The notes under the pieces are model-generated. The model saw nothing but the letters and a program-made list of their open reading frames with translations. It was not told the DNA's origin and searched no databases. Of a stretch of DNA of 64,000 nucleotides, positions 90 to 36,983 are shown one piece after another; positions within the stretch are counted from its first letter, which is position 1, and the number at the start of each line of letters is the position of its first letter. This DNA comes from Chlorokybus atmophyticus (Eukaryota > Plantae > Mesostigma and Chlorokybus algae): positions 186,001 through 250,000 of the forward strand of contig RHPI01002438.1 in assembly GCA_009103225.1 (NCBI GenBank). The letters run 5' to 3'. A program made the translations under genes and the position numbers.

Positions 90-2676
90 TCAAGTTGGTG
101 TTGGCTCTGTGCTTGCAGCAGGATTGCTACTGTCACTAGGTACCACTGCCAGGGTTGCAGCAACAGGCTTGGCCTCGGCATCAGACACAGGAACTGACTT
201 CGTCCCATTCACAGCTTCAGCGGCATGCTCAATGGCGTCACCCGCCTCCACATCAGTGCAATTGCCATTCTTGTCAGCATCTCTTTCGTCATCATCACCA
301 TCAGTGCTCTCAGCAGCGCGCTTCCTGCTTGGCACCGATCTTGCGACCGCCTTCATAACAATACAAACATATCAGCCTGTACTTACTCGTAACTGATTGT
401 CTTGCATGAGATACTGGTGAATGCGACAAGCGCTTGTAGAGTACCTCAGGCCAGGAGCGGCAGTCAAGCCAGTTCAATAAGATTTCCAGCACGTGGTTTA
501 CTGTCAGCACCGACGACGTCTTGAGAAGGGTCGGATCGATTGGTAACTTTGCTGTGGCAATGTTCTGGCTCTGGGCCTTCTCTAACGTCACATGCTGCAA
601 CCGCCATGGCATGATGCATTGCGCTAAGCTTGCGTGAGCCATGTGTGAGGTGCATTAATACTTGCGCATGCGATGCATAGCAAACCACTGTATTCACTTG
701 CCTTGAATCGATTCCGGTCCACAATGCCACCAATGATGTACGCCTTCTTCGGGTCAAGCTCATTCATGGTGTTGGGAGAGTCTGCAGTCAAGTACACAAG
801 GTCCTCTTTGCGTTCGCTATACACATCCATGTAAGACTGCTCTTCTCGTACCACCTGTTCAAGGTCAAGTTGGTTGGCACTCACTGTATTGTTCCCGTTG
901 CACGGCATGGCCTAAACTAAGATGCAATGCACGATCAAAAACCACGCGACAGCAGTAGGTAGGCTCTGAGTGCAAAATTACAACTGAGCCATGGCACGGC
1001 AGTAACACACTGTTGCTGCCAACAAGCTGCGCAGCTGTGCGTTGATACGTGTGAGTGCCTTCTTTCTGTGTTGGTTTCTGTGCGCACAGGTGCCCGTGCA
1101 TTTACACATGTGTGCGTGTAGCATGCGTGCCTGCATGCCTGCATGCAAGCGTACGTGCATTTTGTGTCTGGCGGGGGGGAGGTGGAGGGCGGGNNNNNNN
1201 NNNNNNNNNNNNNNNNNNNNNNNNNNNNNNNNNNNNNNNNNNNNNNNNNNNNNNNNNNNNNNNNNNNNNNNNNNNNNNGGGGGAGGTCGGTTGCATTATC
1301 TGCCAAACTGCAAGCATACCGGCCAGTGTTTAACACCTGGAATGCGATCGAAGCGCTCGGCCATGACGCCTTTGACGCTCGTGAAACACAGCTTGCACGG
1401 TGTTGAGGCGCGCGAGTTAGCGGCGTAACAGTAGATCAGTTGCTGTGTCAAGCTTCGCACTTCCTGCGCATGAACAGGGCAACATTTGTATATATTCCAG
1501 CAAGCTGTACAGATACGCGCGCATGCACGCACGCACACAAACATACATGCCCGCGCACACGCGCATGCCCTTCCACGCACATTGTCCCGCATAAGGTGCG
1601 TGAAGTCCAAGTCAATGACAATGCTTTGGCCCTCCTGAAGCGCACGCTGCTTGTTTTCACGGCGTTCTCTTTGCTTTGCAATGCGCCCCTGCTTGCTCTC
1701 CTTGCGCTTGGCAATCTCCGCCTGTCTCTCCTCTGCCAACCGACGTGGACTGTGAAGAGATTCTATAGCAAGCGCGAACCAACAAAACATGCCAACCACA
1801 AAGCTGCTCAGTGAATTAGTGTTTTGAGAGGCTATTTGACCGGTGCTGGTGCTGACTCAAGTTAACAACCGCAATGCAAGCTACGGCAGTGCGAGCTTTT
1901 GCAAATGTTCATCATCATACGTTAAAATGATGGGCATTGCTTGTCATACCATAATCGTACTAACGACTGACCACGTGACCCTTACAAAGAGCTGAAATGC
2001 AGTGCAACCTGCAACAAGCTGAGTGTCATCACTTTCAAACGTTAATGATGCAACATGCACAACGTCCACCAGAGAAGAAAGTATAGTGGTTGAGTTTGTA
2101 CAGCCACCTTCCGTGAGGGCGTCCAAGTACGCAGCCGACTGCTGCCGCTTATCCTCCCTCTCGGAACGCTTCGCAGCCTTTTTCTCAACCTTCTTCGCCT
2201 GCATTGTCCCCTCCAAGCACTCAGACAGCAAACTCTCAACACTCATAACCACCAACAGTATGTCCGTTGAAAGATGTGACCGCTACCGCCCTGGTGTCAT
2301 AGCAACAAACAACAATATGCGGCCTCAATGACAAGCATTACACCACTACTGCACTCACACCACGCAGCATACTAAGATGTCTCAGCAAACGTCTGAGCAC
2401 TGGTTGTTTGAACATATCATGAAAACAATCAAGAGCCCAGTGTTGCACTCAATGACGAATTGCTGTTTTACTTCACACCTTCACGTACTCCAGCATGCGT
2501 GCTCGCTTCTCCATCTTCTTCCTGGCATTCTTCGACAGCGGCGCTGGCGTTTCCGCCTCTTCATGCCCACCTCCATCCTCAGCCTTCTGCTCCAACCCAT
2601 TCCCTACCACCTCCGCCTCCTGTGTCACCTTCTCCTCCATACCCGCCGCCGCCGCCGCCACCACCTGCTCCGCCAT
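90..2676 (-). CDS. TRM10: tRNA (guanine/adenine-N1 at position 9) methyltransferase, multi-exon; one intron contains an N gap
   Basis: Spliced exons give [11 protein letters not shown]...[51 protein letters not shown] and [19 protein letters not shown]...[12 protein letters not shown], the Trm10 SPOUT motifs. ATG at 2676 (MAEQVV); the last exon ends at 90. Confidence 0.9.
1194..1278. other. Assembly gap (N run) flanked by G runs
   Basis: N run seen directly, inside a TRM10 intron. Confidence 0.95.
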
Positions 2677-3542: not shown

Positions 3543-6500
3543 ATGAACGGCATGAGGGCGCCCACCCCAGTGTGGGGCGAGCCCTCCCCACCTCCAATGC
3601 CGACAGTGCAGCCGGTGTTTAGGACACCGGTTGTCGTGTCTAAGCCGCCTGTGGTTGTGTCCAAGCCGCCTGTGGTTGTGTCTAAACCACCAGTGGTGGT
3701 GATCGGCCAGGCCGTCATCTCGGGGACTGCTGGACATCAACCCAGATCCCAACAGCAGGTACCAACAATTGAAAGCAGACTAAAGAGCAATAGAGCGTTG
3801 CGATGCTTATACTGTACCGTACCACTCGTATGATACCGGCCTTTGCACGCAAACTACAAGCAACAGTGCATTGCGATGTTGTTACTGTATCATATTATGA
3901 TTGTATGGTTTAGTATACCAGTATAGCAGTTAGTTTCAGTGTTCGGTCCTATTCAGTGTAGCCTACACTGCACGGTGGACTGCTCGGCATAGACAATAGC
4001 CCATGGCTGTGACATCCCTGTCTAGAGCTTCGCAGTATGAGTTTGTGCTTGCTTCAAGCTGTGATGTGCTTGCTGGCGTTTTCGCAGGTTGTTCGCGTTG
4101 AAGCCTCAGCAGTGCCGCTCAAGTCTGAGAAGCACAACTCCCGACAGAGGCAATGGACGCTGTGTCCGGTGTACTGCTGCTCTTTTTACTTTGCTTTCAG
4201 CTTCTTCACTTGCGTCATTGGCTTCGCAGTCTTCCCAAAGATCGTGTCGAGTCTGATTGCAGTAAGTGCAACATGTACAAATGTCAACATAACAAACCTC
4301 CAAGAGAAAGGGCGGGTTGCAGCCACCTGAGTGCCTGTGTCATCTTTGTGAATTTACAGAATGCACTCACTGTCACGTCAAAGAATGACGGGTGGGACGT
4401 CAAGAAGCCTTATGTCGACGACTTTGCAAAGGTCAGCAAGATACACCATTGGCGTAAAACCTGTGTCGAGTGGGACATTTTGCAATGGCTCACATGTTGG
4501 CACTGCTTCTCTGCGCAGTACCAAACACTGTACTTCTGGAACATCACGAACAAGGACCAGTTCATGAACGGCTTGGAGCCGCCGATGCTGCAGGTCAATC
4601 ACTAGTATACTTGCATGCAGCCTGCAGCTGTATGCAATGCTCTGTGTGTACTCACCCTGCATGTTTTCAATACAAGCAGGAAGTTGGTCCCTATGTGTTC
4701 AAGTCGACGCGAAGGGTGTACAACGTGACGTGGCTTGATGACGGCAAGCAGGTCCTCCGCAAAAGCAACAGCTTCTACCAATTCAAACCAAAGCTGTCCT
4801 GCCCCACTTGCCATCTGAGACAAGTCTTTCATGTCACCAACTTCTACTGGGCGGTACAGCAAGTCGCAAACCCGCACATGCTTTTCCTGTTTCACACATG
4901 CATCCATACTATTAAGGTAATAAATCTCATTGTTTTGGCATGACACTTTGTTGCAACAGTATCTGCTGGAGGGCTTCCAGCGAAGCGAGTTTGCTTTAGT
5001 GCTGAGTTTCACGCCGTACTACGCGGACGCGGGCGTGCAAGCGTCAGAGGTAATTATTGACCAAGCCAGCCAGTAGGGTGTTTCCGAGACATCAATGGTA
5101 AATTTAATCATAGCAAGGCCTTGTCTGTTCAGGCTGAGTTCAAAGAGTCTGGTTTGTCTTCTGACCCCGCCAAGCTCCATGCCCTGGCGGTGCAACAGTG
5201 GGCCGACTGCTCCGTGCTAAACGGGAAAAGCATCAAAGACGGACCAAACGGTGAGCTTGAGTTTATTGTCTTGCAATTTGAGACTTACTACAGATTGCTA
5301 AACAACGACGTGCGAAGCTGTCTGTACCAAAAATCTTTGTTTGCATTGCATGAGGCTCCGACTTGGGTCTGTACTGGCAGCTTGGACTTGACCAACAGTA
5401 CGCGCTGTCATGAGCATGATTTTGCACTGTGTGCGCAGGTGCCCGCTATCCCTATTACCTGGAGTTCTGTGCTTGGGCGAAGCTAACCGGTAGTCCAGTG
5501 GCCAATCTCACCGCAAGCAAAGCCCAGTGGATTCTGTACGACTCCCCTGCGCACCTCGTAGGCACGAGTGACATGCTCCCGCTTGTATTCGGGGGACCCA
5601 TGGCTGCAGCCGCCAAACTCAACGTGACAGGTACTGCGTGGTGTTGTTGTTACTCATGTCCTTCAAAGTACTATGCATGCCCAGCCTTCTAACGTCACTT
5701 ATGTCACTTAGCATCTGCACTAACACCACGAGTGTGTAGAACAGGTCATGTGCCTGTGTTGCGTCGTATATACTTGGCCTGCAGCGCCTCTGCACTGAGT
5801 TTCTTTATCAGTTGTTTTGTGCGTACGTGATGAACAGAAGCAGAAGCCACTGCCATCTTGAACTATATCAAGTACCTCACGGGCACGCTTGTGTCGGACA
5901 ATTTCCGGGAGACGTACCTGACTTCAGGCACGAGCGGTCCCATCGTGACACGCACGGTTGAGCAGGTCAGTTAGTTGGAGTTATGCCTCATAGATCATTC
6001 ATGTGTTTCATGCTGATTGAGACAAGGAGAAGCTTACACTGTGACCTACAGCTTGTGTTCGGATGGGTGGACGGCGTAGTTGCAACATTTGTTGCCAACA
6101 CAAATCCTCAAGCTGCAGTCTTGCGATTGGCGTATAGCTTCGACGACATCTTCAATACCACTCACTGGCACATACCATGTAAGCTATGCCACAGTGCATG
6201 GCAAACCGTGAATGCGCCGCATTGTTACTTATCGTTGACTCTGCTATCTGGATTGCAGACTCAACGGAGGCGTACCACATGAATGAAGTGGACAAGATAG
6301 CCGACATTATGAAAACGGGCAAGGGCAACGCCAGCGAGAGCGGTGTTCTTATTCAACAGGTTGACACATTAAACCGGCTTAACAATAACAACAAGCCAGG
6401 ACTTACACGCACAAATGCAGGGCCGCTTCATCTCCACAGCTGGTGTCATTGGAAACCTCAAGTCTTTCCCATACAAGAACGCGTCTTCGCCTGTGAATGT

Positions 6501-11122: not shown

Positions 11123-14100
11123 TCACAACGACACGCGCACTTTGGGTCGCCTCTTGCGGATGGACTTGCGCACTGCAGCTGGGACTTCAGCTTCGGTCCC
11201 TCGACGACCGTGATACGAGTAGTACTTGAGACTGGTATCGCTGTCATAAATGGCCGAGCGCTCCGGCACATTGCAGGACGCCTCAGTCTCATCCCACGTG
11301 TTAAGAGCACAATGCCACACCTGTAGGACCCACTCGAGCATCAGCATGCAACCCTCATGCAAAACCACATGTTATAACATCTGACACAACATGGCATACC
11401 CCCGGCAGATCTTTGTGGTGCACGTGCGAAGGCAGTTGCCTCCACTTGTTGCACTTCTCGCACTGCACCCACTTCTCCTGATCCTCGTCGTCGCTGCTGA
11501 GGGTGGCCTCGTCCTCCTCCTCGTCCTCGCTCATGGCCTCCTGCGGCTGCGCGCAATCGGCGTATGCGGGGTTCCAATCGTTCATCTCGCAGAACCAAAG
11601 GGACGGAAGCTGCGAGGCTCGCAGGCCGGGCGGAAGCCGCCTCCACTTGCGACACGCGCGCCGGTCGCACTGAACCCACTGCTTCTCGTCCTCGCTACTA
11701 TAGCTGCAACACAACATACAAGATGAGTATGTGAAAACACGCATCCTCGTAAACACACTCACATGCCCATGCCTTACTTTTCTTCGGCTGTTTCACATGT
11801 GGCGTGTTCTGGATCCCACACGTTCAACGAACACGTCCAATGGTCGGGTAATGCCCCGTCTTCGACATGCGATGGAAGGCGACGCCATTTTCTGCACGCC
11901 TTGTTGTCGCATTGAACCCATTTGCTACCCCACTCATCTTCTGAATTTGTGTCGCTGCCGCCCCCCGATGTGGTTGTCTTGCGCCGCCTCCTACCGCGCC
12001 TTCTTCTCCTTCGAGACCGCGGATACATGTCGGGCTTGGCACAACTATTATGGTCTTCATCCCAAACATTCATCTCACAAAACCTGCATTGCCATGCATG
12101 ACTAGATGTCAGACACTGAAGCACACTCACACAAGGGTATGACAACAATAAAGCTTAACGAGAGAAGCTAACAAGCAAGAGCACAACATGTAGGCACACG
12201 TACCATATGGCTGGCAACTCTGATGCATCAACACCGCAAGGCAGCCGGCGCCATTTGCCGCACGTCCTCCGATCGCATTGCACCCAGATGCCGCCTTGAC
12301 TTGCGTGTTTGGTCTTGACGTCAACATCACCAGAGTGCGCCCGCCTGCTCCTGGAGCTCTCCCCTCGCACGCGAAGCGCGTATGTGCAAGTTGCCGGACG
12401 CTGTCGTGAAGCCGCGGCACCTGTTGAATCACCGCCTGCGCTAACAGACCTGCGGCGCCTCTCTCTTGTCCTACGCCTCGCCTCATGCTCCTGAAACCCA
12501 AGTGCATGTGTGTGTGCATGTGTGCGTGTGCGCGCGTGCGTGTGCACCACAGCTGCCAAGACAGAGCCTATTGGCTACTGACAACGTGTAACACTTGATG
12601 ACATCTTACACAAGCTCGCAGTATGCTTCTTGATCTTGATATCACCATCACTGTTCATGCCATTTACAAGCTTGCTTACTTGGACATGTGTCGTAACCTC
12701 CGTTAGTTCATGCCCGCCTCGGCACCCTCCATTCGGCAGTGCGCCCGCGCACTGAAACATGGAGTTGATTCCCCCTGCTGACGACGTGGACGCCGCGTTG
12801 CTGTGATCCGGATAGCACAGCGCCAAAGACACGACCGCGTGCGCCTCGGGCCCGCGGCCCCAGCCCTTGAAACGCACAACGCAGCAGTCGTCATGGGACA
12901 GCGGCGCTGAGGAAGGCCTGGACAGGTTGTTGTCCGTGTGGCCGATGATGACCTCCTCGACGACCGCATGGTAGTACTTGCCGTCGCTGCGACGCGCGAG
13001 GACGTCACGACCGACCACGGCGCCGACGCGAGCGTGCTCGCCCTTGCCATGAATGCCGGCCTGAACAAGATAAGATATCAGTCATGTGCTTGATGACCCC
13101 TTCCTGTACACAAGCCATGATGGCTCATAGCCTACTAAGCGAATACCTTTGGTTTGTCTTCTAAGCTCTCCGGGCGCAGTCCAACTATGCTGAAGCTCAA
13201 GTCTTCGGAGCAACTCACAAGAAGGTCGTCACCTCCATAGTTGCACCACGACAGATCCCTGCACACAGGTGAGAGAACCGTCAGGATGGCTTTGACTGCG
13301 TGTACAGAGGCTGCAGTGCACCGTAACACAGCTTAGTAGTTCGCATTGAGAGGGTGCAACATACCACACGCTGTTGGAGTGAAGCCACAACTGCTTCACC
13401 ATGGCGCCGCTATACGCATCCCACCATAGAACTCTACCATCTTCACTCGCAGCAGCAACGATTAGGCCATCAGGGCTAAACCTCGCATGCCCTATCAACA
13501 ACCACAACATAATCAGCTGATTGCAGTACTATCAACCGCTTAGATACATGTTGCCATGCGACGCCATGCGGCACAATGAGAGCAATGTAAAACAACATGG
13601 CAAAGCTGTCATTACATACCAGTGCCCCACGCAGCGTTGGTGTGACCGCGCAAGACAGTCCGCACTTGGACAGGGGAGGTGCCGCTAACCAGCTGCGCTT
13701 CATCAATGATGTACATTTCATTGGGCTCGCAATTCACCGCAAGCAACCTGGAAACCGGACTCCGGTCGATTGAGGTCACCGCACGCCCAACAGCGCAGTT
13801 CGACAAGCACGTCACACGCCCGTCTGCTGCGGCTCGAGGGAGTAGTGTACTGGAGCTTTCCGCTGTAAACAAGTTCTAAAGAGTTAGTGCGTGTGCAACA
13901 CCACATTGGGTCTGAACTGCAGCGTTTTGTTCCTAGTCACATGCCGTGATTTATGACAAGCCCACATGGACGAGCAACAGCGTGCAGAAACCCTCACTGA
14001 TGCACAGGAAGGCAACAGAACTTCATATCCACAAGCATGCAAACCTTGGGAGGCGCTGGAGGAAGCCCTTGAGGGTGAAGGTGCAACAACGACAGTGGTG

Positions 14101-16265
14101 ATTGGCTCCGATAGAAAGCGCGTGTCCCACAACCGCAGCGCCGCGTCGGAGCCCGCGCTGACAATCAGGCGATCATCTTCCAGAAACTGCGCGCCCGCGA
14201 CCTTGCCCGTGTGCCCTTCGCAGCGTGCAACGGACTGCACGTTGCGCTCTTCCCAGCTGAAGTGCAATTAAACACTGTCATCTTGCATACTTGACACATG
14301 GCATTGCATCACTTGCGGTAAACCCAACTCGCTTACACGGATGCGATGCCTTCTACGCGAGCAGACATTATCTGGCGAACATCCCACAGCCGGATCGTCT
14401 TATCGTTAGAGGTGCTGAGCAGCAAGGCGGGCTGCGTGGGAGAGAACTGCAAAGAGCGCACCCATTGCGTGTGCCCGTCGCAACTACCCAGCTCTACTCC
14501 AGCCACCATGTCCAAGTAGACAATTCTGCCATGCATGAGTGATGTATCAGTCATTAGAGAGGACATGAACTTGCTAGTGAGGAGAAATCTGCAATAGATA
14601 AGAGGGCATGTTGAGTTTTAACTACAAGCAGATCAGCAGTAATTATACATGCCAACTTGACAATACAAGATCGTATAACGCATATGGTATCAGTATTTAA
14701 CATGCGCGCGCGTGCGTGTGTGCGAGTAAACATATACACATTGACAGTTCACTGAACATGTAGGCATGCAAGTACCTTCCTTCTTCATTCCAGCTACCGC
14801 ATGCCATCTTTTCGCCCGAGCGTTCCCACTCAACAACCGAGATGCCTCCCAGCGACGTGCTAACAGACCCTATCCACGTGTTTCGGTTCACGCCCATGCC
14901 AAGAACACCCGTTGCTTCCCAATCATTTACCACAGCAGAGTGCACTTGATACAAGTCCACGTGGCCAGTGTCTGAGCCGGCAGCAAACACGCGCTGGGTT
15001 GGGCTGCACGCAATGGTCCACGGCACCGTGCCGTGGCTCTCGGCAATATCAACATACCCCAATCGTGTGGCTCGCTGCCATCTGCGTCCTGCCATCGCCT
15101 TGATGGCATGCTTGCAGTACTTCGGTTGAAACTCTCTTTGGTAAAGGGATTGGCTGGCCTGTGATGTGCTGGCCTGCCAGCTGCTGAAGCCTCTGTCAGA
15201 TTGACTGCCCGACAAACGCGGCTTCTTCGCTCTGCGCTGAATAGCCGCTGCATCTCGGCCAGCTGGCACGTGCAACTCGCACTGTAAAATTACTCTTGTG
15301 TCGTAACAGCGGCGAAAGGTGTGCTCGCTTGTGTACAGGTTGCCACTGCCTACACACAAACATGGCTGTCAGAGAAGCGCACATATGCGCATCAGCGATG
15401 CTTGAACGGATCAGCATACAACCTTGTGTGCAGCGGTCACAAGCAAATACATCGGTTGGTTTCCTGCCGAAGCCCTTTGAAGGCTCCCCAACGCATGTTG
15501 TGTGAAACCACTCGTCGCACCTGCAAGAGCAACGACAAGCACGCAGATAAAAATCTGCCTGCATTAGTCATCAACATGATCACATGCAGCTTGCCGTGCA
15601 CTTACCCCACACATTGCACCATGAGGCGTCCATCATCCGGCTGGTTGCAGAAGCAGAATGTGTCCGCGCAGTAAGTGGACTTAAAGTTCAGCGCATTGAG
15701 CGCTCTCTCCTTCAACGCAAGAAAACTTCCTGCATGCACGTAAGCACACAAACAAATTTTATCGATGCGATGCCAACCAACCAATGGTGAGCAACCTATG
15801 TGATATGCAATGTAATTTTTGCCACAGCAAAGCGCAAACTCTCTCTCCCATGATAAAACACACCTCACAGCCTCACCTTTGGTCAATATCTCTGGCGTTG
15901 CCGACTCGCTGCAGCGCGGGCATACAAAATAATGCTGCTTCTTCAACCGAGTCTCATGGATGTCCATGCATGCCCCATGATACCTGCAGTGTGAGCAGTC
16001 ACTAAGCCAACGCCACACAAGAAGTCAAACCAGTGCAAGCTGCAACGTAACAAACATCACAACAAGCAATGCAGCTTACTACTGACTGCGCCTGCCCAAA
16101 CAAGCACCATAGCTTAAATTTGAGCTGCCCTCATATGCATGAACAGCAAAGAGCGTGGTCCTCGAGCATGACCGGTGCTTACCAATGTTGGCATAGGTTG
16201 CACTCCAGCATAAACGAGCCATCGTCAGGCTGAAAGCAAATGCAGTAGGTCTTGATCCCGTCCAT
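11123..16265 (-). CDS. Multidomain chromatin reader: 2x PHD finger, WD40 repeats, Tudor/Agenet-like domain, 4x CW zinc finger (about 15 exons, roughly 1100 aa)
   Basis: PHD1 YCICFQPDDGSFMLECNLCQHWYHGAC...CPRC; PHD2 FCFCNQPDDGRLMVQCVGCDEWFHTTC...CDRC; WD motifs GHTQWVRSLQFSP...SNDKTIRLWD and GHTGKVAGAQF...GSDAALRLWD; Tudor-like VLARRSDGKYYHAVVEEV...VVRFKGWG; four WVQC(D/E)...C.KWR.LP...W.C..N.W CW units. The phases I checked are consistent, including the phase-0 intron 13146-13061 joining the WD40 and Tudor exons. Confidence 0.8.
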
Positions 16266-16827
16266 CAGGGGAGGTAGGCAGTTAAGGCACACCGGCAGGG
16301 CGGTGGTGACGCTGACAGCACCCCCACCCGTCCCACCCTAGCCCCTTCGACTGTATCCCATTACACACCTGACCAGGCAACTCCCCTTAAGCCTAGCTAC
16401 CGCGAGAAGCGCTCAATTGGGCGCAACTCATCACACAGGAGCCGCGACAAACAGCGAGCAGGGAAAAAGCACAATAAAGTTGTTGACCCCCGCCTCGTAG
16501 CACATGCCTTGCTCCTGTGCCTCCAACACCGTCTCTTCCGAGCGCAGCAACGCCACCCACGTCGCCACCTCCGCCGCCGCCACCGGCAGCGGCAGCGGCA
16601 ACGTCGCCGTTGCCAGCATCACACGTGTGACAAGACAATGAGTCACTCGCGAATGATTGACCCATTGATTCACTCATTCACTTTGAGCAAATCACTCCAC
16701 ACTTTGCAGAGTGAATCACTCCTCAGCCTAGAGCACTGTGATTCACGACCGTTTGTAAGCATCACTGCACGTAAGCATACTGAGGGCTTGTCGGCGACCA
16801 TGTAGGCCAGTGTGATTGGCACAGGGG

Positions 16828-21676: not shown

Positions 21677-23523
21677 TTAGTTTCTCAGCGTCCCCGCCCT
21701 CTTGTCGCTGCGCATCACCAGCGTCGCATACGTCCGCCGCCCCAGGTTGCCCACCGCCGGGGATCCGCAGAAGTACACCCACCTGCATGGACACAACAAC
21801 AGTAGTTACACAACCCAAGCACACAGTCCGCAGCGACAAGTACAATGACAACAACACAGTGCACCTCCCAGACTCACGGTATCCAGGTGGGCACGCCCAA
21901 CACGTCCGCATGCGTGTACGCGTACAACCCGCCGTAGTTGATCAACACGATCTCTATGACCGGGCCCGCGAATGCTGTCAACGTCGCCATGAACAGGCCC
22001 CCACCTAACGACATCATCAACACCACACTTGGTCGTGAACATGGCACACGCACACGCATGATTGTGCGTATGCATGTGTGTGCTGCCACACGCGCGCACG
22101 CACGCACGCGCGTCATACGCGCGCACATTGACAACCATAGTTGTGTGATGGTATTACGTGTGCGGTCGAGTAGCCACCAGGTGGCCACCGCGTAAGCCCC
22201 GAGCGTCAAGTCCACGCACGCTCTCGCGACGGGAACGGGTGAGGAGGATGGCAGGGCAGCGGCTTGGGCCAGCACGCCGCTCAGGCTGTACTGCGCCGCG
22301 AACAGAGCGATGCCGGCTGCAGATGGGGTGGTGATGTATTAATGATGTTGGGTTGGGGTTGAACCGACACTGATGTGGTGCATTGTATTGCGTATGGTGT
22401 ACAAAGGATCAGTATAGATCACGCATGCCTCAAACAGTGCATACACGCAAACGTGTATGCACTGATTGAGCTATATGTGCGTATGCGCGCACGCACATAC
22501 TCCTTTACTTTTGGTGCTTTGTAGCGAAGCAGCGTTGTCGAATGTGCATTGTGGTATACTGCAGTGATGCGTAAGCCACTGCAGCATGGTGGTGCGGTAA
22601 TGTGGATTCGTAGTAACTGTGTTTCATTCAGGCACACATCACACTGCACTGCACTAAACCAAACAGCGTACCCAACACGACGGGCCACCTCGGCTCCAGT
22701 CCCATCCTCGCCCCTCTGTCCCAACCTGTACCCACTCCATCCCTCTCGTCAGGTCCCAGGACCCAACGGTCCAGCAGCGGATGCGCCACGCCCAGTATGG
22801 CGCCCGCGACCCCGAACAGCAGCGGGACCCACCAGACGGACTCGAGTTCGTAAAAGGGACCCAACGTGATGTGCTACACAGGGAGAATGTTGAGGTGGGA
22901 GAGGAGATGTTGGAATGTTTCAACCCAGCATATTGTGATGCGTACCGCGGGGGAGGTGTAGTGGAGGACGTCGTGGCGGGAGTGCTCGCCGTCGAGGAGC
23001 GGGCCCAACACGGCACTGGTTGTGGGGAGAGAAAGCATACACGTGTATGTACAACACGCGCACATACACACATTGGGGGCGGGNNNNNNNNNNNNNNNNN
23101 NNNNNNNNNNNNNNNNNNNNNNNNNNNNNNNNNNNNNNNNNNNNNNNNNNNNNNNNNNNNNNNNNNNNNGGGGGGGGGGGGGGGCACGTAGACCCGTGCG
23201 TGACATTCAATGAGAATAATGAGGACAACGGCTCAGCAACCAACACGCGCTTGCTTGTTGGTTGCTTATCGACATTGCAGTGACAACACAGCTGTTATTA
23301 CCCGGATGCGAATGTTGCGACGGTCTGGCGCCAAAGCACGGATAGCGAAAGGGGGGATGATGATGATGATGATGAGCTTGTGATGGGGTTGTATGCGCGT
23401 CGGTTGGTGTGATGACGGCAGGGAGGCGAGTGTCTTGTTTTCCGTATCGGGTTGTTGGGCGCGATGGTGTGGCTTGTGTATGAGGTTGTTGGGTTTGAAC
23501 CGCAGTGCTGCGCGTCGATGCAT
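21677..23523 (-). CDS. Plant/algal INSIG-domain membrane protein, probably plastid-targeted; start uncertain, N gap inside
   Basis: Exons AVLGPLLDGEHSRHDVLHY, WWVPLLFGVAGAILGVAHPLLD, GLFMATLTAFAGPVIEIVLINYGGLYAYTHADVLGVPTWIP and VYFCGSPAVGNLGR match motifs I recall for plant INSIG-domain proteins. Confidence 0.75.
23084..23169. other. Assembly gap (N run) flanked by G runs
   Basis: N run seen directly. Confidence 0.95.
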
Positions 23524-24402: not shown

Positions 24403-26648
24403 TCAAGTGATGCGCTGTACACTCCAAGTGGTTAAGGGGCCAACGAGTAGTGGTTTGTGGGACTCATCACTTGCAAGGCTGCGTAGATAATGCTTTGTTT
24501 GCTGCAAGTAGGGTGCAACCACCTTATTTTAGCCCAAAATTCATACGCATGTGTACATGCATGTGTACAGGCAATGCAAGTGATGTATGCCACAAGCAGC
24601 GCCACATGCATCGTGCACAACCACATAGGCATGCAGCGTGCATGACATGGTGAAACTTAGGGCTCATGCCAGCCCGAGTCCACTGCATAGCCTGACTCCT
24701 TATTTCCTGAACCATTGTCCTAGATTTGACCACCTCTTTCCAAACACCTACGACAGCATTCACAAGATTCCACTACGTCACAAGGCTACTAGTGTTGTTG
24801 GCTACTGTTGTCACTAAACAACATTGTCAATACACAATGTTGACATACATCGACTATCACCAATACTGGGTGTTGATCATTGCACCTAGTCATCATGCTC
24901 GACACAGCAAGCCCTCACTCAGACTGCCACTGATACGCACATGCGCGTGCCATGCCAGTTGGAACCCTGCTGACCATGTCTAGCATGGCCCTGCAAGGTA
25001 GGTCACTACGGTGCAGACGTCCAAAGACGCTGACGCATGCACTTCATCTTCAAGCCTGTAGCGGAAGAGCAACGCTTTCGGTTGGTCCTGCGACTGTGTC
25101 CTGGCCTTAAAACCTGGAAGGAGGTTGGTATCAATAAACCATGCATGCTTGTGCACATACCTGCATGCTAGCAGACTTCCTCACCTCATTTGCAAGTCGC
25201 GCATGCATACCGCAATGCGCGACTTGCACTGCACACATGCACGCGCCAGCCACTGAGCAAAATGTTTTGCTCACCTAGGCGAGGGTACCAAAGCTTGGGA
25301 CTGCTGTACTGATATGATAGCATCATGCACCGTCATCCTCCACACGTATGGTTGCATGGTCCTTGTCACTTGCCTTCCTGCAAAGACAATGCGGACATTA
25401 GATAGTTGCCACATCGTATTCGCTGTCGCCACTAGTACTATAACTACTCAAGCAAAACCTTGCACGCAACTGGCAAGCACACAAGTAACAGATTGTGAAG
25501 TAACAAATGGCAGTACTACGACAATATTCGTGGCACAGAACCGCTGCTGTGTCAGAGAGATTCCCATTGAGATTTTGATCTTCACCCTTGCCTTTGTTGA
25601 AAGGCGAGTAAGATGTCCCTAATCTCGGTATCATCATCCACAGCCTTCGAGACCATGATTCATAAGCTACAAGGCTCCCATGCAAGACAACACTCAAGGG
25701 TCGTTTCATGCAAGTGGCAAGCGCACAAGAACAGACTCACGAATGATGCATGCGCAGACCCTGATGGCGCACGACTACTGCTGTGTCAGAGAGATTCCCA
25801 TTGAGACTTTGATCTTCACCCTTGCCTTTAATAAAAAGGCCAGTAAGATGTCCCTAATCTCGCTATCATCATCCACAGGATTGAGGACATGACTCATATG
25901 CAAGGCTGGCACGCAGAGACGACAAAATGACAACATTCGCACGCTCAGACTACCTTTGCAACATTTGGTAGTCTTCGAGGCCTCACTGGTTTGCTGCTTG
26001 CATGGCGTCAGAAAATGATTGCTTCTCAATAAACAGCGATCGCGGTCATACACTCAAAGATGAGGCCCCCTGCACGATGATACCTGCACAACACTGTAGG
26101 CTGTCAGAGCACTGTGTACACAAGCAAGAGGGCATGACAGTTCACAAGTCAAACACCCAACCATGCACGCACGCAATGCATGTAGTTAAGGCAAATCTAC
26201 TCAAGCAACTATGCCACCAGAGCCAGAACAACAACGGCGAACTACACAAGCGCTGTGCATTAAAGCGCTGAGCAGCCAGCGAGAAGCTTTCGCTACTACT
26301 CACTGCAGGCATGCAGTGGACGCTTGGCGGCTTGGTTTCAACAGCAGCAAGCACACCTGCCCAGAAGAAGGACACCGGACCACGACATGGTCAACTAGGA
26401 AGCGAGCTCCTTCAGTCAGTGTCTTGCTCTCTGTCTCGCTCTATGTCTCAGTCTGTTGGGCCTCACCTCTGGAAGCCTGTACAGGCCACGCTCAGCCGGC
26501 CGTCCACCCATGCTACCCTCATCGGCTCACAGAGCGACGCCCTCCGCCGCCCACGACATGTGCGCTGTTGGCGCCCAACGTCGTGCAGAGGGCAGAGTCC
26601 CACACATTCAACTACTGGCGCCAGCACCAACGCGGCCGCCGCCACCAT
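24403..26648 (-). CDS. Hypothetical multi-exon gene with a transit-peptide-like first exon; model unresolved
   Basis: First exon MVAAAALVLAPVVECVGLCPLH...RGRRRASL ends at a strong AG|GTGAGG donor. Several later segments have good splice signals (GFKARTQSQDQPKALLFRY; GVWKEVVKSRTMVQEIRSQAMQW; LASDESHKPLLVGPLTTWSVQRIT*), but I could not join all phases. Confidence 0.35.
25544..25877. repeat. Tandem duplication: two ~100-bp copies, 234-bp period
   Basis: 25544-25642 and 25778-25877 are near-identical (ctgctgtgtcagagagattcccattgaga...catcatccacag), with a few substitutions and a 1-nt length difference. Confidence 0.9.
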
Positions 26649-33900: not shown

Positions 33901-35273
33901 TGTAAAATTTGCGACGATGTGCCATGCGTACTTTGTTTGCTTAGCATGTCACGGTCACTGTTGGACGTGAATAAAAACACAGCCATGTAGCATTGTGTTG
34001 GAAGTCAATTGCACGTGCATAAGAAAAACTCTCTGAGCATGCAACGCATGTATTTATCCTCTTACATTAAGGTTTTTCAACTTCGCATGCGAGGATAAAT
34101 GCGCCGCAACAATAAGCAGCACTTCGCAAACACTTTAGGCTATTCATATTTCGAAAATGCTGGCATTACGTTATCATTCATAGCAATAGCATTAATGGAG
34201 GATTAAGAAAATATCAACAAATATGCTATAAGCAATAGCGGTACAAATTGTAACACACATTGATGTAGTGAAAGACGACATTGGGTGCTACCGGTCGGTG
34301 TGATTTGTGTATGCGTATAGCTATAAACGAGACAAATATTGATACTTTCTCATTTGTCAATTTGAGCTCAATGCGTCCTTAATATATACTTCATCTCAAA
34401 GGAGGAAAAATACGACCGGTGCAAATATCTCATGTCTAACAATACACTCAAGTTGTAGCGCAAAGTGTAGCTTGCGGTGCACATTAATGCTTAAATTATT
34501 CTTAGTATGCAACACTATGATACGATGATTTGTGTGCATACTGTTGCGCATTGACAGCGAGTTTGAAGGTATGAATTGACCCTTTATGTTTTATTAAAAT
34601 AACATAAAACAACCCCCATTTGATTGTATATTGTGCATACGTTGTGTACAATTACCTAAGCCAAAACGCTATTTTGATTACATGTTGTAAAGTTGCATTA
34701 CAGCCATAAACAAGGTAAGATAAATGGGGTCATGAAACACTTACGCGCAATATTATCACTTGGGTGGTACAATGGTATTGAACAACACCATGTTTACGGT
34801 TACCAACTGTCATATAAAACTTCGGGTTTGTACGACATAGTCACTTGATTTCATGATTATTCGTATGCATTTGTGGTTGAATGACCATAATACCATGATC
34901 ACAATTCTTACAATCGCTTACGATTACCTATTACTATGTTTATTATTGTTGCCATGAACGCAATTATTGTCGTATTATTCTTACTATCATCAGCAATAAT
35001 AAAAAATTCAAACATTGCATGTTTGCATAATAAAATGCATATCAGTTTCTTTGATTAATTATATGAATGCCACACTTATTATTTATCGTGCATGGATTAC
35101 AAACATATTTGCAAAGAAATAAACAACAAGAAGTGCACGCACAATATCTGGTTTGATTGTAGTATGGTATACCATATTTCATTGGTTAGCAGCCCACGCA
35201 AGAATACCCCCCCCCCTCCCCAAAAAAACATGCATTTATTCAAGTGTAATTCTTATTAAGGGGGAGGGGGGGG

Positions 35274-35507
35274 NNNNNNNNNNNNNNNNNNNNNNNNNNN
35301 NNNNNNNNNNNNNNNNNNNNNNNNNNNNNNNNNNNNNNNNNNNNNNNNNNNNNNNNNNNNNNNNNNNNNNNNNNNNNNNNNNNNNNNNNNNNNNNNNNNN
35401 NNNNNNNNNNNNNNNNNNNNNNNNNNNNNNNNNNNNNNNNNNNNNNNNNNNNNNNNNNNNNNNNNNNNNNNNNNNNNNNNNNNNNNNNNNNNNNNNNNNN
35501 NNNNNNG
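35274..35507. other. Assembly gap (N run) flanked by G runs
   Basis: N run seen directly. Confidence 0.95.
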
Positions 35508-36983
35508 GGGGGAAGGGCTTTTGTACAAAGGTTGGGCTTCTATCTGGGCAAAGACATCATATATGCACTAGTGCGTAGCAGCATGTAATATACATGTATA
35601 TACAATCATTCTATCATTTTGAGTACTATTTTGCATAAATAGACCAACACTTAAATTGTTACTCAATGACACCACACTTATGAAACTGTTGGCACCAATA
35701 GTTGCATCAATATATTGTAACTGCCATACAGTTTGCAAATTGCAGATTTTGCAAGCAAACATTCCACAGCCATGCAAAAAACGCATAGCCTAATTCGTAC
35801 CTCACCTTGCATCTACTGTTTACTCTCGGTATACAAATTACGTTTTATTTTTCAGCTTTTCATGGTACCAACGGGGTTATTCTTTTGGCGCTTATAACAA
35901 TATATATTCTTTTATTGTCTATATATATTCCACTAAAAGATGTATTTTCGTAATATCCGTAAGTCACGTCACCGTATGCTGATGTGGCAAGAAAGGAATT
36001 GAGACATAGACATCAATAATTATGTTATGTACATAACTATTTATGAATTTTGTGACATGTTTATGCTAGTAACAATGTAATAGCATGCCGTTAACGAGGT
36101 ATTCCCCCTTTATAAGACTGAGCCCCCTCAAAATTATGTACAAGACTATTCCACTAACCAATAAAATTTGCCTATTAAACCATCGGTCTTTTGCAAATTT
36201 ATGATCTTAACGGGGTTATTCTCTTTAACCGAAGCCTTTCAACGGCAAACACCCTTGCACAAGGTGCTGCACGCCTACCTGGTATCCCTTGGCTTTAGTG
36301 TTTGATGTATGCTTCTCGCGTCACCGTTTGATAAAGAGAGCGCTTGGCAACTTGGGGGCCAGGTACGGCGGATTGGGCAGTCGCAAGTTGCGACTCGCAA
36401 CAGTAAGAGTTACAAAGCGTGTGTACCGGTATGCAGTGCATTGTCTGTGAATTTATCTAGGTAAACAGCCTGCACTGTCTAGGATATTCCTAGACAGTGC
36501 CGAGGGGACAGTCACCGGCAGGTTTGCTTTTTCGTGCCGGTATCCCCAAGGCTGCATGGCCAATGCATGCACGTTGTGTGCGTCCAAGCAGCCATGTTGC
36601 CTGTGCCTCGGACGCCCGAGGCTGGCCGTCCATGGGCGGAGCAGCAGGCTGGTGGCCATGGGGGAGGGGAGTGTGGGGGTGGGGCGGGGAGAAGGAGAGG
36701 ACGGGCAAGAGACGTCTGTCAGTGCCGTTGCCTGCCCCTCTGTCCCTTTCATCTTCCATGAGCAGCAGCTTGCTGCTCCGGCTCCTGTGGTTGCGTGGGG
36801 AGCAAGGAAGCTTTGCCACAGCGTGCTGGTTGGCATCGGTTGGTGTGCCGGAGGGTAACCAACCTGACTTGACTGGACCACACAGCCTTCGCCAAGCAGA
36901 TGCTGAAGGAGTGAGCTAGGGAGAAACCACATGCATGCTAGCCCTCCCCAACGGTAGCATTCGGTTTGCTATTTGCTCTAAGC

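Follow-up and report, generated by a model that had tools for sequence, protein, structure and literature searches.

A 64,000-nucleotide window of the genome of Chlorokybus atmophyticus (Streptophyta, Chlorokybophyceae; assembly GCA_009103225.1, contig RHPI01002438.1, positions 186,001 to 250,000 of the forward strand) contains one nuclear protein-coding gene for a protein of about 1,120-1,135 residues that combines, from the N- to the C-terminus, PHD finger 1, PHD finger 2, a WD40 propeller, a small β-barrel candidate and four CW fingers. The coding region occupies positions 16265 to 11123 of the window on the minus strand, as do all features of the gene described below, and there is very little doubt that it is a single gene with this domain content. 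The protein is probably a histone-methylation reader or adaptor. Judged from its sequence, we consider it likely that it binds histone H3 methylated at lysine 4 (H3K4me) in a multivalent manner, with the propeller, less certainly, as the output side of the molecule. Multivalent binding is suggested by the zinc ligands and methyl-lysine cage residues, which are kept in both PHD fingers and in all four CW fingers.

Gene structure and the junction of its two halves

The gene was rebuilt from the sequence and checked by script. Along the minus strand, 15 exons separated by 14 introns joined into one open frame that starts with the ATG at 16265-16263 and ends with the TGA at 11123, both of which were checked base by base. 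The introns were 73-199 nt long and GT-AG boundaries were present in all 14. The first spliced model gave a frame of 3408 nt with the terminal stop as its sole stop and encoded 1135 aa. With exon 1 at 16265 the product has a length of 1114-1144 aa, set by the splice choices at introns 5 and 11; an earlier note on this DNA had given ∼1100 aa, and we prefer the form of 1123 aa. The GC content was 0.58 in the coding sequence (0.65 at third codon positions) and 0.47 in the introns. PHD1, PHD2, CW1, CW4 and several WD blades are interrupted by introns and become complete only once the proposed splicing is applied, which rules out chance as an explanation of the gene model. The Pfam scan of the spliced product returned two PHD fingers, the WD40 repeats and four zf-CW fingers and no catalytic domain, as the earlier note had it, while the Tudor-like domain on the same list stayed below the Pfam cutoff.

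The PHD/WD40 half and the Tudor/CW half are joined by intron 10 (13061-13146), a phase 0 intron of 86 nt that reads GTATTC...TTCAG. The WD40 exon closes with ...EDKPK at 13147 and is followed from 13146 by the donor GTATTC; the acceptor is TTGTTCAG. Exon 11, with the opening sequence AGIHGKGEHARVGAVVGRDVLARRSDGKYYHAVV, begins at 13060 and encodes AGIHGK...VLARRSDGKYYHAVV. The position, length and phase of this intron had been claimed before, and the base-by-base check found every coordinate to be exact.

The locus could also be read as two adjacent genes, one encoding PHD-PHD-WD40 and ending at a stop at 13135, the other a separate Tudor/CW gene downstream, with the fusion as an annotation artefact. 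Read-through past the donor at 13146 does reach that stop after three codons, intron 10 is spanned by no domain, and the Diphylleia rotans relative described below lacks CW fingers and is not significantly similar to the Tudor segment. The frame of the exon that encodes the Tudor-like barrel, however, is closed by a TGA 21 nt ahead of the acceptor and offers no ATG before the barrel, the first in-frame Met coming only after it. This exon can therefore not begin a protein, and a separate start could not translate the barrel. In addition, 86 nt leave too little room for one gene to terminate and for the promoter of a next one, both splice sites of the intron are canonical and join in phase 0, and a MAKER annotation with transcript evidence has the same 13146/13060 junction. 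The two-gene reading was rejected because the Tudor exon has no start and has an in-frame stop upstream; we regard it as extremely improbable. That the Tudor/CW half has no need of a start of its own, as had been proposed, is thus borne out.

The best database match of the spliced product was the eukprot entry jgi/Chlat1/704/Chrsp104S01209 (P0001), an uncharacterised protein of 1157 aa that mapped back onto the locus with a 100% match in 15 exons. The published MAKER annotation of C. atmophyticus was built with assembled transcripts (PMC7027972). As Chrsp104S01209 already joins both halves at 13146/13060, the single-gene structure is correct but not new. The two models differ in exon 1. The public exon 1 (16435-16619; MLATATL...AAPV), for which no homology was found, is spliced to 15983, which removes half of PHD1 together with its first four zinc ligands. 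The exon 1 of the earlier note (16183-16265; MDGIKTYCICFQPDDGSFMLECNLCQHW) encodes the first half of PHD1 and gives this finger its full Cys4-His-Cys3 set, and the Diphylleia homologue likewise has a Met a few residues ahead of a complete PHD1. For these two reasons exon 1 at 16265 is preferred, and the public exon 1 probably stems from an erroneous call or from an upstream open reading frame. In practical terms, PHD1 is cut short in the public gene model, which needs correction.

Two further splice choices left the domain boundaries untouched. Intron 5 has alternative 3' splice sites (14525-14588), with the acceptor placed before 14588 in the first model and before 14525 in the annotation. 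Both are in frame, and the latter is preferred because it yields a canonical WD repeat (GSWNEEGRIVYLDM). Intron 11 lies in a low-complexity linker (12204-12680) and can be drawn as 12679/12491 (GTAAGC...TTTCAG) or, as in the annotation, as 12611/12450; again both are in frame and no domain is affected. The alternatives shift the product by 21 residues at intron 5 and by 9 residues at intron 11; they may reflect genuine isoforms or noise of the prediction. Introns 11 and 5 also contain short tracts of low complexity that are (TG/CG)n-like (12505-12545 and 14703-14727, respectively).

Probable histone-reader fingers, barrel candidate and propeller

PHD finger 1 (aa 7-53; 15908-16247) is split by intron 1 and PHD finger 2 (aa 88-136; 15427-15658) by intron 3. 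The Pfam PHD profile (PF00628) matched two stretches with 68.7 bits against a cutoff of 24 (E 4e-19). All 16 zinc ligands of the two fingers were present and were invariant between the Chlorokybus and Diphylleia proteins. Among solved structures, PHD1 was nearest to BPTF, PHF8, PHF2, DIDO1 and CFP1 (E 3e-11 to 1e-9) and PHD2 to Spp1, SHL and ING4, with E-values across both fingers from 3e-11 to 1e-4. Both fingers thus fall with the BPTF/PHF8/PHF2/DIDO1/CFP1/Spp1/ING proteins, which places them in the ING/Cfp1/BPTF class to which they had been assigned from the bare sequence. The cage positions of these relatives align, and the cage-equivalent residues are Y7, M19 and W28 in PHD1 and F88, M100 and W109 in PHD2. 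In the alignment of PHD1 to BPTF (2f6j), Y10 corresponds to Y7, Y23 to M19 and W32 to W28. PHD fingers of ING proteins use a semi-aromatic Tyr/Ser/Met/Trp cage (PMC5000080), and by alignment the predicted cage of PHD1 is of this type. The Y/F-M-W cage residues of PHD2 are also kept in Diphylleia. The best solved PHD relatives belong to a remodeller, demethylases or COMPASS subunits, unlike the context in which the fingers stand in Chlorokybus.

The four CW fingers follow one another in the C-terminal part, with strongly basic and strongly acidic tracts between them. CW finger 1 (12041-12289) is split by intron 12 inside the codon of its third conserved Trp. CW finger 2 (11795-11923) is preceded by a basic tract, RSRRRRRRGRRRRK (11978-12019), which is likely a nuclear localisation or nucleic-acid contact element. 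CW finger 3 (11553-11681) is followed by an acidic tract (11475-11534), and CW finger 4 (11273-11474) is split by intron 14. The Pfam zf-CW profile (PF07496) matched four stretches with 192 bits against a cutoff of 27.5 (E 1.3e-57). In an alignment of the four fingers (A1) the cysteines C12, C17, C38 and C50 were invariant, as were W9 and W20, which align with the tryptophans of the MORC3 WVQC and KWR motifs (W410/W419). In MORC3 these two residues are the cage tryptophans (PMC10612106). The solved structures matched by the fingers were those of ASHH2, MORC3/4 and ZCWPW1/2 (E 4e-9 to 1e-5). With this grouping and both cage tryptophans kept in every finger, the CW fingers are predicted to be of the methyl-H3K4-reader type, as had been claimed. 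The fingers share 39-50% amino acid identity with each other and no DNA-level repeats were found among the CW exons, which indicates that they are old duplicates. ZCWPW1/ZCWPW2, MORC3/4 and ASHH2 (SDG8) have the same CW signature of four cysteines and two cage tryptophans. In those proteins, however, a single CW finger stands beside a PWWP, ATPase or SET domain, whereas the Chlorokybus protein has four in tandem and, in the Pfam scan, no enzyme domain.

Between the propeller and the CW fingers lies a candidate Tudor-like (SH3-like) β-barrel (12809-13015; VGRDVLARRSDGKYYHAVV...CCVVRFKGWGRGPEAHAVVSLALCYP) with a loop insert of 19 residues. A single-sequence AlphaFold model of 80 residues (predicted local distance difference test score, pLDDT, 68) showed four strands around the disordered 19-residue loop. 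The top of the Foldseek list, none of it significant, was enriched in the Tudor domains of KDM4A, UHRF1, PHF20, PHF1 and SETDB1 and in SH3-like barrels of the Cren7 type. A pairwise BLAST against the human SMN Tudor domain, of use as a lead only, paired CVVRFKGWG with CVVVYTGYG over 15 residues (E 0.019). A Tudor/SH3-like barrel is, from these models and comparisons, plausible but unproven.

The WD40 propeller (∼aa 243-613; 13177-15035) is encoded by exons 5-10 and scored 72.8 bits against the Pfam cutoff of 27 (E 2e-20). Seven blades were counted by inspection. The count was made by eye only, and the full-length AlphaFold2 model computed without an alignment had a pLDDT of 30 and was unusable. 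Blade 3 ends in NDKTIRLWDVR and blade 4 in SDAALRLWDTR, so that two DWD boxes stand in tandem in consecutive blades. Box 1 in blade 3 (14375-14422; LLSTSNDKTIRLWDVR) satisfies the 16-residue DWD motif in its strict form. Box 2 in blade 4 (14118-14165; IVSAGSDAALRLWDTR) fits D-x3-R-x-WD-x-R and fails the strict motif only at position 15. Both boxes are conserved in Diphylleia, as NDKTIRVWDTR and SDQSIRVWDRR. Boxes of the type D-x3-R-x-WD-x-R are a signature for the docking of DCAF receptors on DDB1, and the tandem arrangement of D-x3-[RK]-x-WD-x-[RK] has been reported for most DDB1-binding WD40 proteins. The tandem boxes, a point absent from the earlier note, suggest a link to an effector rather than a passive scaffold.

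Ahead of the propeller lies a conserved segment (15048-15149; SLYQREF...KH..K...RLGYVD) whose L-x-x-R-E-F core is common to the Chlorokybus and Diphylleia proteins. The core stands ∼35 residues before blade 1 and is spaced like L1054/R1057 in the H-box of DCAF1, a pattern of low information in a segment whose similarity between the two proteins has a z-score of 1.7. This segment could be a DDB1-binding H-box helix.

Distribution and relatives

The public protein Chrsp104S01209 was used as the query of an exhaustive phmmer search against 1.84 billion cluster representatives. The query itself scored 2734 bits and the next match 242 bits, and the matches from there on were generic multi-repeat WD40 proteins. 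Nine other matches (778-1042 aa) were scanned with Pfam for PHD and CW fingers and all were WD40 only. No closer relative from another green alga or from a plant was found above 141 bits, and no second protein with the full architecture was present among the representatives, in line with the earlier statement that no named protein is built in this way. A protein specific to this lineage had been proposed as well. For the full combination of domains this holds, but not for the PHD-PHD-WD40 half, which has one collinear relative in Diphylleia rotans (CRuMs).

This relative is a protein of 622 aa encoded by a Trinity transcript, EP00002_P002997 (P0163), in which Pfam detected two PHD fingers and WD40 repeats. 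It aligned to the Chlorokybus protein with 28% identity over 638 columns (E 6e-59) and has the same order of a Met, PHD1, a linker of ∼36 aa, PHD2 and a single propeller with tandem WDxR boxes. It differs in that CW fingers are absent, a Tudor-like barrel was not detected and Gln replaces the PHD1 cage Trp. The transcript may be 3'-incomplete, or may come from prey in the culture. Blades 1-2 of the two proteins were similar in a shuffle test (z 8.8), yet they score no better against each other than against generic multi-WD40 proteins.

For the Tudor/CW half, a word-index search found only tandem triple-CW proteins of stramenopiles (Achlya, Tribonema, Triparma and Aureococcus) and of metagenomes, which hold the nearest CW sequences; no plant CW proteins surfaced. 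These proteins have 43-52% identity per finger, are of the same WFCEMNxWD subtype and also carry their fingers in tandem. In contrast to the Chlorokybus protein, they have three fingers followed by a conserved C-terminal module (LSYRRIIFG...) and no WD40 repeats, and PHD fingers are absent from them except for an NSD-type PHD in the Achlya protein. The Tudor exon found no homologues in the word-index search, even at E ≤ 10.

A metagenome scan seeded with the Chlorokybus/Diphylleia alignment returned only unrelated PHD proteins, a KDM5-like fragment and a Ty3/gypsy-type element. The last of these, on metagenome contig MOXH01000143.1 (790-3315, plus strand), is a Ty3/gypsy-type Pol with reverse transcriptase, RNase H and integrase that ends in a PHD finger. 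The finger is of the same class as those described here (CxCxxPDDGxLMIQCDxCxEWYHxxC), and the element is unrelated to the Chlorokybus gene. Its PHD finger suggests integration targeted by a histone-mark reader.

Possible functions and genomic surroundings

In the proposed mechanism, the six PHD and CW fingers, perhaps with the barrel as a seventh reader, would bind K4-methylated H3 tails across one or several nucleosomes. The propeller would form the output side, where the boxes of blades 3 and 4 would dock DDB1, and the protein would recruit a partner, the ubiquitin ligase CUL4-DDB1 or a different one, to chromatin with methylated H3K4. An older PHD-PHD-WD40 core would have gained the barrel and the four-CW tail in the Chlorokybus line. 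The reading of methylated H3K4 as such is, on sequence grounds, moderately probable, while a role as a receptor of the CUL4-DDB1 ligase (CRL4) is a tentative proposal and rather doubtful.

Several observations weigh against multivalent H3K4me binding with the propeller as output side. The full cage of BPTF has a second Tyr, whereas Chlorokybus PHD1 is without a counterpart of BPTF Y17, and the PHD1 cage Trp is not kept in the Diphylleia relative, where Gln stands at this position. For the barrel, the Pfam Tudor_2 match (E 7e-4) reached 19.8 bits where the cutoff is 31.4 and, of the 35 profile positions, took in no more than the first 21; the Tudor exon had no sequence match in the PDB (phmmer, E ≤ 10), and Foldseek gave no significant match to the barrel model (best E-value 0.2). 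The DWD motif has little specificity, being found in about half of the WD40 proteins of plants and algae, and the comparison with solved structures did not link the propeller specifically to a named WD40 family. Finally, shuffle tests against the Diphylleia protein gave z-scores of 2.0 for the PHD linker, 1.7 for the pre-propeller segment and -0.8 for the post-propeller segment. The last value leaves a shared Tudor domain unsupported and, since the separately tested linker and post-propeller segments were not significant, it is the domain order and the total score that argue for orthology with Diphylleia.

Two other explanations were considered. The protein could be a passive multivalent scaffold, a kind of chromatin "glue", in which the propeller is a further surface for histones or peptides, as in WDR5, EED and RbAp48, and in which there is no link to a ubiquitin ligase. 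WD40 propellers of chromatin proteins often bind histone tails, WDR5 is among the PDB matches of the propeller, where its score is as generic as that of many others, and the low specificity of the DWD motif points the same way. The tandem D-x3-R-x-WD-x-R boxes in consecutive blades, kept between two very distant species, speak mildly against a passive scaffold, which we consider possible, if unlikely. The combination of a PHD finger of the Spp1/CFP1 type with a propeller of the Swd/WDR type could alternatively point to a subunit associated with COMPASS (Set1/MLL). COMPASS has several WD40 subunits, Spp1 chains are the best solved relatives of PHD2, and PHD1 matches CFP1. The similarity of the propeller is generic only, however, with ∼69 bits against WDR5, the level of dozens of unrelated propellers, and Pfam detected no other region of Spp1/CFP1. 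Both a COMPASS subunit and a WDR5 orthologue were rejected as the propeller has no specific similarity, and the COMPASS reading is very improbable.

Multivalent H3K4me binding with an effector propeller would have its closest functional analogue in the animal proteins PHIP/BRWD2, BRWD1 and BRWD3, chromatin CRL4 substrate receptors that consist of a WD40 propeller, a cryptic Tudor domain and two bromodomains. PHIP binds nucleosomes multivalently (trivalently) and recruits CRL4 to chromatin (PMC8653789), and BRWD3 controls H3K4 methylation via the degradation of KDM5 (PMC10523488). The likeness lies in an N-terminal propeller with WDxR boxes, followed by a small Tudor-type barrel, a candidate in Chlorokybus, and then by an array of readers. 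The Chlorokybus protein differs in that it has PHD and CW fingers, which read methyl-lysine, instead of acetyl-lysine-reading bromodomains, and in that two of its readers are N-terminal to the propeller. The sequence relationship to PHIP/BRWD is at the level of generic WD40 repeats, and DDB1 binding is here predicted from the motif. The Pfam scan of the Chlorokybus protein found no bromodomain, and the protein is therefore not a member of the PHIP/BRWD family. A more far-reaching idea, which we hold to be speculative and less likely still than a CRL4 link in general, is that of an independently evolved chromatin-bound CUL4-DDB1 receptor. Anchored to H3K4-methylated nucleosomes by six or seven methyl-lysine readers, it would ubiquitylate nearby chromatin proteins as a PHD/CW counterpart of PHIP/BRWD, with an ancient PHD-PHD-DCAF core whose survival among eukaryotes would be patchy (Chlorokybus and Diphylleia).

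Elsewhere in the window, the neighbouring genes gave no evidence of a functional link to the reader gene. They include a fragment of the CD36 family (4470-4943, plus strand; E 4e-9) and a fragment of a tRNA (guanine-1) (m1G) methyltransferase (624-908, minus strand; E 1e-9). The DNA between the ATG and ∼16800 has the look of a short divergent promoter. A C/D-box small nucleolar RNA of the snoR44/J54 family (Rfam RF00357) occurs twice in tandem on the minus strand (25546-25644 and 25780-25879), and the copies exceed the gathering score with 53 and 56 bits. An AT-rich island of ∼2 kb (34100-36200) has a GC content of 0.32-0.36 as compared to ∼0.52 elsewhere and contains an assembly gap (N run, 35275-35506) with homopolymer runs of C and G at its borders. 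The island may represent a repeat, DNA inserted from an organelle or a fault of the assembly. More assembly gaps, seen as N runs and as X in the translations of open reading frames, lie at ∼1100-1200 and ∼23000-23100.

The individual domains of the Chlorokybus protein are ordinary and multivalent histone readers are well known, while the full combination appears to be unique and its N-terminal half older. What is unusual is that a single polypeptide may combine as many as seven reader modules, among them four tandem CW fingers, and that these readers are coupled to a propeller that bears a DDB1-docking signature. The solution found by PHIP/BRWD proteins is to read marks of active chromatin and to recruit a ubiquitin ligase. 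If the link to CRL4 is true, an early-diverging streptophyte alga would have reached this solution with different reader domains.

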